From: Schizochytrium sp. TIO01
Lineage: Eukaryota; Protista; Bigyra: Labyrinthulomycetes
Reading direction: 5' to 3'
Assembly (NCBI GenBank): GCA_004764695.1
Contig: SMSO01000031.1
Location: forward strand, 162,436-226,435
Length of the DNA stretch: 64,000 bases
Made by a program: the position numbers and the translations under genes. The notes under the pieces were generated by a model. It ran no database searches. It was not told the origin of the DNA and saw nothing but the letters and a program-made list of their open reading frames with translations. Every line of letters begins with the position of its first letter. Position 1 is the first letter of the stretch. Positions 24,219 to 27,200 of the stretch are shown here, one piece after another.

Positions 24219-27200
24219 TTATTGTAGCCTTTCAAAAGCTCGCCGACACTTGTTCGATGACGGAAATCGTTGGTGTGCGTCCGAAACACACTCACGTGCA
24301 CCCAGCTTGATAAGAATCTGAGACACTTTGTCATTCCACGATAAATTGAAAATTGCCCCGCATGCTTGTTCTTGCACGTCTGCATTGGTTCGATGTTCGC
24401 GCATGGCGGCCACAATCTCTGCGCCCACATTCAAATCTTGTCCCAGGCTCTCTCTGTTGCGGTCATTTAGAGCAAGATTCCTCAATGCCCCACATGCTTT
24501 TTCTTGCACGCCTGCATTGGTTCGATGTGCACGCATGGCGGCCACAATCTCTGCGCCCACATTCAAATCTTGTCCCAGGATCTCTTCGTTGCGATCATTA
24601 TTTGCAGCAAGATTCCTCAATGCCCCACATGCGCACTTTTGCACGTCTGCATTGGTTCGATGTTCGCGCATGGCGGCCACAATCTCTGCGCCCACATTCA
24701 AATCTTGTCCCAAGATCTCAGCGTTGCGATCATTTAGAGCAAGATTATTCAATGCCCCACATGCTTGTTCTTGCACGTCTGCATTGGTTCGATGTGCGCG
24801 CATGGCGGCCACAATCTCTGCGCCCACATCCAAATCTTGTCCCAGGATCTCTTTGTTGCGATCATTATTTGCAGCAAGATTCCTCAATGCCCCACATGCG
24901 CACTTTTGCACGTCTGCATTGGTTCGATGTTCGCGCATGGCGGCCACAATCTCTGCGCCCACATTCAAATCTTGTCCCAAGATCTCAGCGTTGCGATCAT
25001 TTAGAGCAAGATTATTCAATGCCCCACATGCTTGTTCTTGCACGTCTGCATTGGTTCGATGTGCGCGCATGGCGGCCACAATCTCTGCGCCCACATCCAA
25101 ATCTTGTCCCAGGATCTCTTTGTTGCGATCATTATTTGCAGCAAGATTCCTCAATGCCCCACATGCGCACTTTTGCACGTCTGCATTGGTTCGATGTTCG
25201 CGCATGGCGGCCACAATCTCTGCGCCCACATTCAAATCTTGTCCCAGGCTCTCTCTGTTGCGGTCATTTAGAGCAAGATTATTCAATGCCCCACATGCTT
25301 GTTCTTGCACGTCTGCATTGGTTCGATGTGCGCGCATGGCGGCCACAATCTCTGCGCCCACATCCAAATCTTGTCCCAGGATCTCTTCGTTGCGATCATT
25401 ATTTGCAGCAAGATTCCTCAATGCCCCACATGCGCACTTTTGCACGTCTGCATTGGTTCGATGTGCGCGCATGGCGGCCACAATCTCTGCGCCCACATTC
25501 AAATCTTGTCCCAGGATCTCTTCGTTGCGATCATTATTTGCAGCAAGATTCCTCAATGCCCCACATGCGCACTTTTGCACGTCTGCATTGGTTCGATGTT
25601 CGCGCATGGCGGCCACAATCTCTGCGCCCACATTCAAATCTTGTCCCAAGATCTCAGCGTTGCGATCATTTAGAGCAAGATTATTCAATGCCCCACATGC
25701 TTGTTCTTGCACGTCTGCATTGGTTCGATGTGCGCGCATGGCGGCCACAATCTCTGCGCCCACATCCAAATCTTGTCCCAGGATCTCTTTGTTGCGATCA
25801 TTATTTGCAGCAAGATTCCTCAATGCCCCACATGCGCACTTTTGCACGTCTGCATTGGTTCGATGTTCGCGCATGGCGGCCACAATCTCTGCGCCCACAT
25901 TCAAATCTTGTCCCAGGCTCTCTCTGTTGCGAGCATTTACAGCAAGATTATTCAATGCCCCACATGCTTGTTCTTGCACGTCTGCATTGGTTCGATGTGC
26001 GCGCATGGCGGCCACAATCTCTGCGCCCACATCCAAATCTTGTCCCAGGATCTCTTCGTTGCGATCATTATTTGCAGCAAGATTCCTCAATGCCCCACAT
26101 GCGCACTTTTGCACGTCTGCATTGGTTCGATGTGCGCGCATGGCGGCCACAATCTCTGCGCCCACATCCAAATCTTGTGCTAGAGTAATTCGGTTTTTCA
26201 TATTACTGAACGCGAGGGTCCTGACACAAGCACATGCTGCGGCCTGCACCGCTGCTTCGCTCGCGTGCTCTTGCATAATACTTAACAGTACCGGGCCGAT
26301 ATCATAGGTCGTCATTGCAGCTTCAGCATACTCATCGGTAGCTTCACGATGAAACGCGAAATGGAATATCCAAAGTGCTTCAGAAATCACTTCGGTGTCG
26401 CGTTGCTCTTCCTTTAGGATTCTCTGCAAATGAACAAGAACGCCCCGCTCACGAACAACTCTCCTCAGCTCATCATCGCCACCTGCGGTCTCAGCAGCTT
26501 TGAATTCACCTTCCAGAGCATCATGCAAGATCTGCAGTGTTCGTAGCAGATCCGTTCGATCGCCTCGATCAGCCAGATCTCGAACTAGACCCCGCACCAT
26601 TTCGACATTCACATTTCGTTTTGCAGATGTGCGATGGTTTTTCTTTCTGAATGCAGCCGCAAGCCCGCGAATGATACGGCTCGATCGGCGTTCAGCACCT
26701 AGAGACTCGAACCTCTTTAGAGCCTCCTCAGCAGTTGGTCTGTTTGCAGGTTCATCGTCCCAACAAGACTCCATGATGCGGACTATCCAGAGTTTCACAG
26801 GTATTTTCTCAGATATTTCAGGACGCTCGCCTGCGAGAACCCTGCATTCAAGCTCTCCTGGTTGATACACGAGATGCTTGTATGGCGTCTCCTCGTGGTA
26901 CATCTCCCATATAATCAGGCCTAGAGAATAGATGTCTGCCTTTGTTGTCCAACGAGCTGGAGCTTGAAGTACTTCTGGAGCCATGTACACCGGGGTTCCG
27001 GCCACCGAAATGCTGTCTGCAAAGCTTGTATTCGGGCTCGTTCTGTCTGCAAGACCAAAGTCTGCGAGTTTTACTAGGCCAAGATCTTGACTGAGAAGCA
27101 CATTGGCAGGTTCCAGATCACCATGAATCACATTTTCACTGTGCAGATAGCAGAGCCCTCGCGTGACACCGCGCAAAATGGCTTCTTTATCATCCAGTCC

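Follow-up and report, generated by a model that had tools for sequence, protein, structure and literature searches.

How can the units of a tandem repeat remain almost identical over most of their length and differ, in several amino acids, at a handful of codons? This question is raised by a locus of the protist Schizochytrium sp. TIO01 lying in a stretch of 64,000 nucleotides (GCA_004764695.1, contig SMSO01000031.1, positions 162,436 to 226,435), the whole of which is referred to here as the window. A first-pass annotation of the window had placed an armadillo (ARM) repeat array at 24358-26178 and had attributed the variation among its units to diversifying selection on ligand specificity. 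The identity of the array, the location of its variable codons and the forces acting on them were examined in the window and in the arrays of its paralogs across the genome.

The armadillo array and its gene

The proposed array proved to be the 14-unit ARM array of g3, an intact minus-strand gene of 1309 codons and the sole copy in the window whose frame is uninterrupted in the list of open reading frames (Table 1). The open reading frame that holds it (24219-28226) matched the Pfam models ARM_LRRK2 (3e-52), Pkinase (2e-44) and Arm (2e-22), the kinase match lying at amino acids 242-504 of g3. ARM_LRRK2 (PF23744) scored 178 bits against a cut-off of 26.2, and Arm (PF00514) scored 79 bits against a cut-off of 20.6. 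An AlphaFold2 model of units 1-8 (pLDDT 95.7) contained the helices H2, H3 and H1 in each unit of 44 or 45 amino acids, as assigned by DSSP. In Foldseek searches, TM-scores of about 0.74-0.85 were obtained to designed ARM proteins (4rv1 and 5mfm), the ARM domain of LRRK2, importin-alpha and Vac8, and the closest solved structures by sequence were Vac8, LRRK2 and the catenins. On the basis of the profile match, the three-helix stacked units of the predicted structure and the conserved Asn37 of helix 3, the array is an armadillo array. The last of the degenerate repeats that precede the regular array reads ...LSIMQEHASEAAVQAAACACVRTLAFSNMKNRITLAQDLD, and unit 0 scored 27 bits with the unit profile in hmmsearch.

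Table 1. Coordinates of the three gene copies, their arrays and the codons of interest (s, first base of a unit)
Feature	Position	Strand	Details
g3 gene	24219..28148	-	ATG at 28148, stop at 24219-24221; N-terminal helical domain of about 215 aa, protein kinase, ARM array
N-terminal helical domain of g3	27504..28148	-	from AlphaFold2 model and Foldseek
Degenerate N-terminal ARM/cap repeats of g3, from kinase to regular array	26166..26600	-	start approximate
g3 ARM array	24305..26165	-	13 internal units and C-terminal cap unit
First bases of g3 units	26165, 26030, 25898, 25763, 25631, 25496, 25361, 25229, 25094, 24962, 24827, 24695, 24560, 24428
Variable codons	s-57 and s-60 (positions 29/30), s-69 (33), s-78 (36), s-90 (40)
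Codon of position 2 of next repeat	begins s-108 (45-aa units) or s-105 (44-aa units)
Codon of Asn37	begins s-81
g2 ARM array	19007..20867	-	ORF 18921-22565; unit starts determined
g1 ARM array	15047..15569	-	ORF 14961-17267; internal units EEGNNL, KYGWNY and KNAWNV, and cap

The array was detected by TRF at 24372-26178 with a period of 135 (13.5 copies, 89% matches) and with a period of 267 (95% matches). Named by their variable residues, seven units of the type KCGRNA alternate with five of the type EQGNN(L/V), and are followed by one EKGRNL unit and the cap. The g3 array itself is a young amplification of a two-unit block, and it therefore carries only two or three groove types. The arrays of g2 and g3, which are part of a 5298-bp tandem duplication, showed 0 nucleotide differences per unit.

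The N-terminal domain of g3 was modeled by AlphaFold2 with a pLDDT of 79.5, and the top Foldseek rows for this model were all MLKL (the executioner domain, a four-helix bundle with a brace). Seven MLKL entries aligned to it in VIA-align with Z of 8.4-10.2 (115-132 residues), values below about 13 not being decisive for helical bundles, and the next unrelated helical bundles gave Z of 8 or less. In the whole genome, at least 73 family matches and 30 arrays were found, with 4-49 units per gene. When the parts upstream of the arrays were searched with Pfam in 10 paralogs, a kinase domain was found in all 10, and no NACHT or NB-ARC NTPase was found in any of them. The identity of these proteins as NLR/STAND receptors was rejected on this ground.

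Variable codons and the face of helix 3

The first-pass annotation had described the DNA of the units as almost invariant apart from a few multi-allelic codons. In the 16 internal units of g1 and g2, 29 of the 45 codons were identical, 4 varied only synonymously and 12 varied in the encoded amino acid, in agreement with that description. The multi-allelic codons were also those listed: the two after VQ (K/E, then C/Q/K/E/Y/N), the one before the Asn (R/N/W, with F in the C-terminal cap only), the one after NLA (A/L/V/Y, with W/R in the caps) and the one after RN (A/E/K/R). These changes fall at positions 29/30, 36 and 40 of the designed ARM repeat and at position 2 of the one that follows. The suggested register of helix 3 is consistent with the designed-ARM consensus, V27 and C32 coinciding with Ile27 and Leu32, which are buried, and the peptide-contacting Glu30 and Trp33 are matched by variable residues (PMC4756613). 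The claim that the variable sites are among those randomised in designed-ARM libraries could be followed in part: the papers confirm only Glu30, Trp33, positions 1/2 and the buried 27/32, and the seven library positions are given there without numbers (PMC11228518). Position 33, which was absent from the initial list, is Gly in the window and hypervariable genome-wide (G/A/R/W/V). Asn37 is present in all units of the window and in 142 of the 213 units of the family, and is otherwise Ser, Ile or Lys.

Because the g3 array consists mostly of two alternating unit types, the window contains few independent events. Therefore, 213 units from 20 paralogous arrays of this one genome were aligned. The entropy was 2.4-3.1 bits at positions 29, 30, 33, 36, 40 and 2, and less than 0.7 at most scaffold columns. 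The six most variable residues of helix 3 fall within a 120-degree arc, and the helical moment of entropy was 0.54 (permutation p = 0.0004). From the helix register, this helical periodicity and the homology to designed ARM proteins, the variable residues are predicted to lie on the surface. In solved ARM proteins, the corresponding face of helix 3 forms the concave groove that holds extended peptides.

The first-pass annotation had inferred a modular peptide-reading code loosely analogous to TALE RVDs. TALEs use a small di-residue alphabet in which one unit corresponds to one base. The present arrays resemble them in that the tandem units are nearly alike apart from a few fixed positions, which face the ligand in TALEs and putatively do so here. 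However, six to eight positions vary per unit in this family, and the putative ligand is a protein, not DNA. The 213 units carried 168 distinct six-residue tuples (138 singletons, and 8 common to several genes) and 48 different 29/30 pairs. The code as proposed, of the TALE type, is not borne out by these numbers; the variation is open-ended hypervariability rather than a small alphabet.

Selection on the groove and other explanations of the pattern

The nucleotide distance between scaffolds was 0.083 within arrays and 0.149 between arrays; the scaffolds are homogenised within arrays. The mismatch at the variable residues was 0.65 within and 0.75 between arrays. The rates of substitution were estimated by a tree-free method, in which the scaffold was split in two, one half serving to choose independent pairs of units and the other to measure dS. 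In these pairs, pN at the hypervariable sites was 0.34, whereas pS and pN of the scaffold were 0.175 and 0.066, respectively. Relative to the scaffold dS, omega was 2.3 at the variable sites (bootstrap CI 1.9-3.0), and omega of the scaffold was 0.35.

Tree-based tests, which assume one tree for short, recombining units of 135 nt, gave parsimony dN/dS of 2.1-2.8 at positions 30, 33, 36, 40 and 2 (Poisson p < 1e-7). In site-wise maximum likelihood analysis, beta exceeded alpha at positions 30 (p = 0.007), 33 (p = 0.002), 40 (p = 0.004), 2 (p = 1e-7) and 26 (p = 0.0015), of which position 2 alone survives Bonferroni correction. When the variable columns were excluded from tree building, the support was unchanged or became stronger. 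Once a separate synonymous rate was fitted at each site, positions 29, 36 and 37 were not significantly above 1, and positions 29 and 36 passed only against the scaffold dS. A likely reason in the case of position 36 is that both CGG and AGG serve there as Arg codons, and a single step leads from either of them to TGG. Of the codons for which diversifying selection had been proposed from the window, those of positions 30, 40 and 2 were therefore upheld, and those of positions 29 and 36 were not when judged by their own synonymous rate. At the level of the family, to which the support mainly applies, the data speak for diversifying selection on the groove face.

The array at 24358-26178 is probably the ligand-recognition sensor domain of a kinase family, in which the scaffold is homogenised and the groove residues are under diversifying selection. 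The family is large and would have been expanding recently; its members have a kinase between a predicted MLKL-like helical domain at the N-terminus and the ARM array. Both unequal crossing-over and gene conversion would act to keep the scaffold near-identical, even at silent sites, and would shift the number of units (4 to 49). At the same time, selection for new or different binding specificities would keep swapping a handful of residues, namely those of the helix-3 face (26, 29, 30, 33, 36 and 40, and partly the Asn37 ladder) and position 2, where helix 1 of the following repeat starts. Ligands may be bound in the groove, probably stretches of extended peptide from proteins that are foreign or variable, and the kinase and the N-terminal domain may be regulated by this binding, in the manner of an immune or cell-death receptor made of one chain.

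Relaxed constraint alone is an unlikely source of the pattern. Under it, the groove residues would drift with omega of about 1, the scaffold would be kept intact by purifying selection and homogenised through gene conversion, and diversity itself would not be selected. An omega of about 1.1 was indeed obtained when the synonymous differences of the variable codons themselves were used, the results at positions 29, 36 and 37 agree with drift, and the value of 2.3 may be inflated because homogenisation may lower the scaffold dS. However, the lower bootstrap bound of that value is 1.9, and beta exceeded alpha at five sites. Furthermore, beta was only 0.4-1.2 at the exposed positions of H2 and the loop and less than 0.3 at core positions, compared with 3-6 at the variable positions; this marks the effect as one of the groove in particular and not of drift over the whole surface. 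If gene conversion acted neutrally, the variable codons would also be evened out along with the codons 3-9 nt from them, but their mismatch within arrays is still 0.65.

Another explanation concerns this locus, where two ancestral unit types may have been amplified very recently as an A-B block and the genes may now be decaying under no selection. It gains from the regular alternation of the two unit types and the TRF period of 267, from the identity of the g2 and g3 arrays, and from the catalytic loop, which is derived in g3 (HGDLEPAN, against HRDLKPAN in paralogs). In addition, two of the three copies are frameshifted, the N-terminal domain being out of frame in g1 and g2 and lying in a separate open reading frame (22529-22918) in the case of g2. 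Because of these disruptions and the two or three groove types of g3, the locus may lack current selection. On the other hand, g3 itself is intact, and its two unit types differ almost solely at the codons that are hypervariable in the family. When g1 was compared with the last four units of g3, all 14 codon differences at the variable codons were nonsynonymous (0 synonymous), against 4 of each kind at the scaffold codons (Fisher one-sided p = 0.0096). We regard a mere by-product of amplification as quite improbable; it would in any case concern the timing at one locus and be compatible with diversifying selection at the family level.

A regional mutational hot spot was rejected, since silent diversity beside the variable codons was not raised: third-position diversity was 0.176 in the flanking scaffold codons and 0.225 elsewhere. 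The variation is confined to single codons, and an informal inspection of the flanks of the arrays showed no template-like repeat. Codon-directed hypermutation or templated diversification, by which targeted mutation rather than selection would create the variation, is very hard to credit, because a mutator that leaves flanking silent sites unaffected would have to strike isolated codons 3-9 nt apart, and we know of no such eukaryotic mutator; what it would account for is the high diversity of the variable codons at all three codon positions (0.46-0.49) and their many multi-nucleotide differences. Equally hard to credit is an assembly artefact, that is, a collapsed or chimeric repeat, which could alter the order or number of units but not produce a position-specific pattern that recurs in at least 20 separate arrays on seven contigs of the 37-contig assembly and in Hondaea and metagenomic homologs. 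Grounds for considering such an artefact are that the g2 and g3 arrays are identical, that public short-read (Logan) contigs break inside the g3 array, parts of which have no contig at 97% identity, and that mis-assembly from short reads is a known problem of highly conserved repeats (PMC12222747). At least part of the gene was found in 20 public runs from 11 studies, of which 19 contained half or more of its sampled words. The loose contig ends inside the array start at or beside variable codons, but these are not independent evidence, since contigs of the De Bruijn type are interrupted wherever the repeats differ.

Relation to known systems and significance

A homogenised scaffold combined with hypervariable binding residues is a hallmark of the repeat sensors of fungal non-self recognition (WD40, ANK and TPR). 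The high-internal-conservation (HIC) repeat sensor domains of fungal NLRs have reportedly been treated by Paoletti and Saupe and by Dyrka in 2014. HIC repeats in fungal NLRs include the WD40 repeats of HET-E, HET-D and NWD as well as ANK, TPR and HEAT repeats; the units are 80-100% identical within a gene owing to concerted evolution, and a few hypervariable codons on the predicted interaction surface are under diversifying selection (Ament-Velasquez 2025, PMC12222747). The arrays of the present family are similar in that the units are near-identical within a gene (89-95% matches) and more alike within than between genes (0.083 vs 0.149), and in that each unit has a few hypervariable codons with dN > dS (positions 30, 33, 40, 2 and 26), placed on the surface by register and homology. 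They also share clustered multigene families and a number of units that differs among paralogs. In contrast, the repeat type is armadillo, which is not among the HIC types listed in PMC12222747, the signalling part is a kinase with a predicted MLKL-like N-terminus instead of a NACHT or NB-ARC NTPase, and the family belongs to a stramenopile protist rather than to a fungus. A full-text literature search of incomplete coverage found no paper on thraustochytrid armadillo kinases and no description of hypervariable armadillo arrays of this kind, and for HIC armadillo repeats it gave only LRRK2 and unrelated papers.

The predicted helical bundle and brace followed by a kinase or pseudokinase recalls MLKL and the MLKL/HeLo-like proteins of plants and fungi, at a fold match (Z of about 10) that is below the safe level. 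To our knowledge, MLKL has no C-terminal repeat sensor. The combination of ARM and kinase is shared with LRRK2, and ARM_LRRK2 is the best Pfam repeat model for the array; the ARM domain of LRRK2 differs in being N-terminal, is not hypervariable and binds Rab GTPases.

Designed armadillo repeat proteins (dArmRPs) of the Pluckthun laboratory, importin-alpha and beta-catenin share with the g3 array the fold, the register of helix 3, the buried positions 27 and 32 and the Asn37 ladder. Positions 30 and 33, which vary naturally in the family, correspond to the peptide contacts Glu30 and Trp33 of dArmRPs, and position 2 adjoins position 1, a residue used in engineering an arginine pocket (PMC4756613). 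Unlike in dArmRPs, position 33 is mostly Gly or Ala and not Trp, another residue takes the place of Asn37 in roughly one unit in three, unit length is 44 or 45 amino acids and not 42, and peptide binding is putative. Modular binders of the importin-alpha and dArmRP type take up an extended peptide in antiparallel orientation, at about two residues per repeat; the present arrays agree with them in fold and in the placing of the variable residues. In dArmRPs, one dipeptide is read per repeat (PMC6838082). By analogy, the arrays might be natural modular peptide readers in which positions 29, 30, 33, 36, 40 and 2 of each unit would read about two ligand residues, so that a target motif would be predictable from the order of the units and the alternating A-B array of g3 would read a periodic target such as a repeat protein of a virus or parasite. 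Such a protein-recognition counterpart of the TALE and PUF codes, housed in an NLR-independent, one-chain MLKL-like immune receptor, is a long shot.

If the array is the ligand-recognition sensor of a kinase family, the HIC mode of evolution would extend to armadillo as a new class of repeats and to a new signalling chassis, in which an MLKL-like domain and a kinase act without the NTPase of NLRs. Sensors of the HIC type would then reach a new eukaryotic supergroup, represented by a stramenopile. Furthermore, the family would be a natural source of groove variants, numbering in the hundreds, of the very groove that is randomised in designed armadillo binders, and these could guide the design of libraries.

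Genes and repeat units of the window

The source assembly is eukaryotic (64 Mb, 37 contigs). Pfam assigned g3, one of three tandem kinase-ARM paralogs, a protein kinase (aa 242-504) and ARM repeats across its C-terminal half, the best repeat model being ARM_LRRK2 (3e-52). The only named close homologs were 'Protein kinase, putative' entries of the thraustochytrid Hondaea fermentalgiana; the remaining close matches were metagenomic proteins. A 5298-bp tandem duplication holds g2 and g3, whose ARM arrays show 0 nt differences, and this duplication is either very recent or an assembly duplication. 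The N-terminal helical domain of g2 is a separate ORF, and the g1 ORF begins downstream of this domain. Since g3 alone keeps one frame, the other two genes look like copies that have suffered frameshifts.

Features of the window (positions in nucleotides)
Feature	Position	Strand	Remark
g1 ORF	14961-17267	minus	tandem paralog of g3; 3 internal units and cap
Duplication holding g2 and g3	~18868-24165 vs 24166-29463		
g2 ORF	18921-22565	minus	tandem paralog of g3
g2 helical-domain ORF	22529-22918	minus	129 aa; frame differs from that of the kinase-ARM ORF
g3 ORF	24219-28226	minus	first ATG 28148; contains the variable array
g3 ARM array	24372-26178		
g3 catalytic loop	~27150-27200	minus	HGDLEPAN
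g3 N-terminal 215 residues	27504-28148	minus	predicted helical bundle
ORF with 24-bp repeats	41075-42811	plus	
24-bp tandem repeats	41528-41670, 42155-42231		perfect or near-perfect; CCGACTCC(C/T)GAACCTACTGGATAC

The g3 array was resolved by TRF at period 135 (13.5 copies, 89% matches) and at period 267 (95% matches), with 45-aa and 44-aa units in alternation. The 16 internal units that g1 and g2 carry between them were invariant in DNA at 29 of 45 codons, varied synonymously only at 4 and varied in amino acid at 12. At least three alleles were found at the second residue after VQ (six amino acids), before the conserved Asn (R/N/W), after NLA (A/L/V/Y), after RN (A/E/K/R) and at the residue preceding RN (mostly Asp, Ala once, Val once). 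The first-pass annotation had correctly described near-invariant repeat DNA with changes piled up at a few multi-allelic codons; its list of sites was sound as far as it went, and left out the residue before RN and, at the family level, position 33 (designed-ARM numbering), which is Gly in the window and hypervariable across the family.

The g3 array consists essentially of two alternating unit types, KCGRNA (seven) and EQGNN(L/V) (five), the letters being residues 29, 30, 33, 36, 37 and 40. It arose recently by amplification of a two-unit block. Few independent events are therefore recorded in the window. Between the last 4 units of g1 and g3, the variable codons showed 14 nonsynonymous and 0 synonymous differences, and the scaffold codons 4 of each (Fisher p = 0.0096). 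Unit exchange rather than new substitution may explain part of this difference, because some units of g1 are similar to units of a paralog nearby (g1 KYGWNY, locus L032 KYGWNV).

At least part of g3 is present in public contigs of 20 runs, which belong to 11 studies; 19 of these runs contain at least half of the words sampled from the gene. The kinase and N-terminus are covered by the short contigs, with single-base differences scattered along them. The array is covered in patches only, and the contigs reveal neither its structure nor expression of the gene. Loose contig ends fell at or next to variable codons (24469, 24851, 24869, 25437, 25798 and 26054; columns 21/22, 33, 36 and 39), and between 25802 and 25953 one contig of run X5 departs from the reference over 15 nt. 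The loose ends fit other unit variants in related strains, but a de Bruijn assembler would also be expected to produce them in repeats.

Predicted fold and helix-3 register

Eight-unit windows of paralogous arrays were aligned (53 rows), and an AlphaFold2 model of g3 units 1-8 reached a pLDDT of 95.7 and a pTM of 0.90. Each unit is predicted to form three helices, namely residues 2-11 (H2), 16-30 (H3) and 34-43 (H1 of the next repeat). Foldseek neighbours of the model were the designed ARM proteins 4rv1, 5mfm and 6s9o as well as LRRK2, importin-alpha, Vac8 and catenins (TM 0.75-0.85), and the solved structures closest by sequence search were Vac8, LRRK2, plakophilin and beta-catenin.

Alignment on the conserved Asn gave V27 Q28 x29 x30 A31 C32 x33 A34 L35 x36 N37 L38 A39 x40, which bears out the helix-3 register assigned from sequence and agrees with the designed-ARM literature (PMC4756613). 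In designed ARM proteins, the buried residues include Ile27 and Leu32, the peptide is contacted by Glu30 and Trp33, position 33 sets the curvature of the binding site, and position 1 has been engineered into an arginine pocket (PMC4756613); the concave surface binds one dipeptide per repeat (PMC6838082). The six most variable helix-3 residues lay within a 120-degree arc of the helical wheel (entropy moment 0.54, permutation p = 0.0004).

Variation and selection across the family

At least 73 array matches were found in the genome. Twenty regions yielded 30 ORFs carrying 4 to 49 units, and the N-terminal parts were kinases in all 10 scanned. A second cluster 2-20 kb past the window end (G000:C30:228000-245999; L031, L032) holds at least three further arrays of 18, 14 and 15 units; the kinase of the L032 gene is intact and its HRD loop canonical, and the groove of this gene differs in nearly every unit. 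The ORFs at L037 (G000:C30:5208000-5217999), L046, L048 and L043, which are 2200-2600 or more aa long, carry giant arrays with 47-49 units, and in some of these ORFs the kinase-bearing N-terminal part is short or absent. Hondaea and metagenomic homologs share the unit framework, but their scaffolds have diverged further.

Of 553 units aligned to the unit profile, 213 from 20 genes scored at least 60 bits and were kept. Entropy peaked at positions 29 (2.4 bits), 30 (2.9), 33 (2.4), 36 (3.1), 40 (3.1) and 2 of the next repeat (2.7), was intermediate at 26 (2.0) and 37 (1.8), and was mostly below 0.7 bits in scaffold columns.

In a tree-free test, half of the scaffold codons, drawn at random, served to pick independent nearest pairs, and the remaining half supplied dS. 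The variable codons had a pN of 0.34, and the scaffold a pS of 0.175 and a pN of 0.066. The Jukes-Cantor-corrected omega was 2.3 at variable codons (bootstrap 1.9-3.0) and 0.35 in the scaffold; with the 'synonymous' differences of the variable codons themselves as the reference, which are dominated by multi-step paths, it was only about 1.1. Parsimony counts on a FastTree tree from all columns, a conservative choice, gave dN/scaffold dS of 2.2, 2.1, 2.1, 2.8 and 2.4 at positions 30, 33, 36, 40 and 2 (Poisson p < 1e-7) and 1.1-1.3 at 26, 29 and 37.

In a site-wise likelihood test (our own GY94-type implementation, branch lengths fixed), beta exceeded alpha at positions 30 (p = 0.007), 33 (0.002), 40 (0.004), 2 (1e-7) and 26 (0.0015); column 3 also passed (p = 0.007), yet its beta was below 1. 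Neither position 36 (beta 4.9, alpha 3.0) nor position 29 was significant in this test. When the tree was built without the variable columns, support grew at the same sites, and 36 and 29 again failed to pass. When the synonymous rate was held constant, the assumption of codeml site models, beta was 2.8-6.2 (p < 1e-11) at 30, 33, 36, 40 and 2. Arg at position 36 is CGG in 21 units and AGG in 18, each one step from Trp TGG, which probably explains the high alpha; the pattern probably reflects recurrent Trp-Arg exchange rather than silent change. Since beta was 0.4-1.2 at exposed H2/loop positions and below 0.3 at core positions, the acceleration is specific to the groove. These results support diversifying selection, as had been claimed, on the groove face of the family, placed by register and homology, at positions 30, 33, 40, 2 and 26; the claim is equivocal for 29 and 36, which were not significant against their own synonymous rate. 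Of the sites listed in the first-pass annotation, 30, 40 and 2 had beta above alpha in this site-wise test on the 213 units, and 29 and 36 did not significantly so.

A mutational hot spot at the variable codons, where diversity was 0.46-0.49 at each of the three codon positions, is unlikely, as third-position diversity was 0.176 in adjoining scaffold codons versus 0.225 in other scaffold codons. Concerted evolution of the scaffold is evident: its nucleotide distance was 0.083 within and 0.149 between arrays, and the variable-residue mismatch within arrays (0.65) was nearly as high as that between them (0.75). Because neutral conversion tracts would erase them, differences at variable codons that persist 3-9 nt from homogenised neighbours argue for selection.

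Domain composition and place among known systems

The g3 N-terminus was modelled with a pLDDT of 79.5. Its top Foldseek matches were all the MLKL executioner domain (probability 0.95-1.0, E 0.04-0.4), and the seven best in VIA-align were also MLKL, with Z of 8.4-10.2 over 115-132 residues, below the level safe for helical bundles; the CC-R domain of Arabidopsis NRG1.1 gave Z 6.9. The predicted fold is thus suggestive of an MLKL-like domain. The non-RD catalytic loop of g3, with Lys replaced by Glu, is the same in g1, g2 and two L034 genes; paralogs of L032 and L038 and Hondaea homologs have HRDLKPAN, and L033 has HGDLKPAN. DFG, VAIK and APE are retained. With HGDLEPAN in place of HRDLKPAN, the kinases of the window may have altered or lost activity, and their catalytic competence is uncertain.

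The six-residue tuples numbered 168 in 213 units, 138 of them singletons and 8 found in more than one gene, and 48 different 29/30 pairs occurred. The ARM tuples are open-ended rather than a small reusable alphabet such as that of TALE RVDs, and the peptide-reading code proposed by analogy with TALEs is not supported as stated. Binding by the arrays may nevertheless be modular.

No published description of this hypervariable ARM-kinase family was found in a literature search. High-internal-conservation (HIC) repeats of fungal NLRs (WD40 in HET-E, HET-D and NWD; also ANK, TPR and HEAT) undergo concerted evolution, which keeps unit identity at 80-100%, and in each unit about four codons on the interaction surface are under diversifying selection (PMC12222747). 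Every evolutionary feature tested here in the Schizochytrium family is also present in these domains. The family is nevertheless not an NLR, because its repeat is armadillo rather than WD40, ANK, TPR or HEAT, its putative signalling part is a kinase with a predicted MLKL-like N-terminus and without an NTPase, and its host is a stramenopile rather than a fungus. The HIC domains of fungal NLRs are its closest known kind, and its variation is open-ended hypervariability like that of immune-type sensors.
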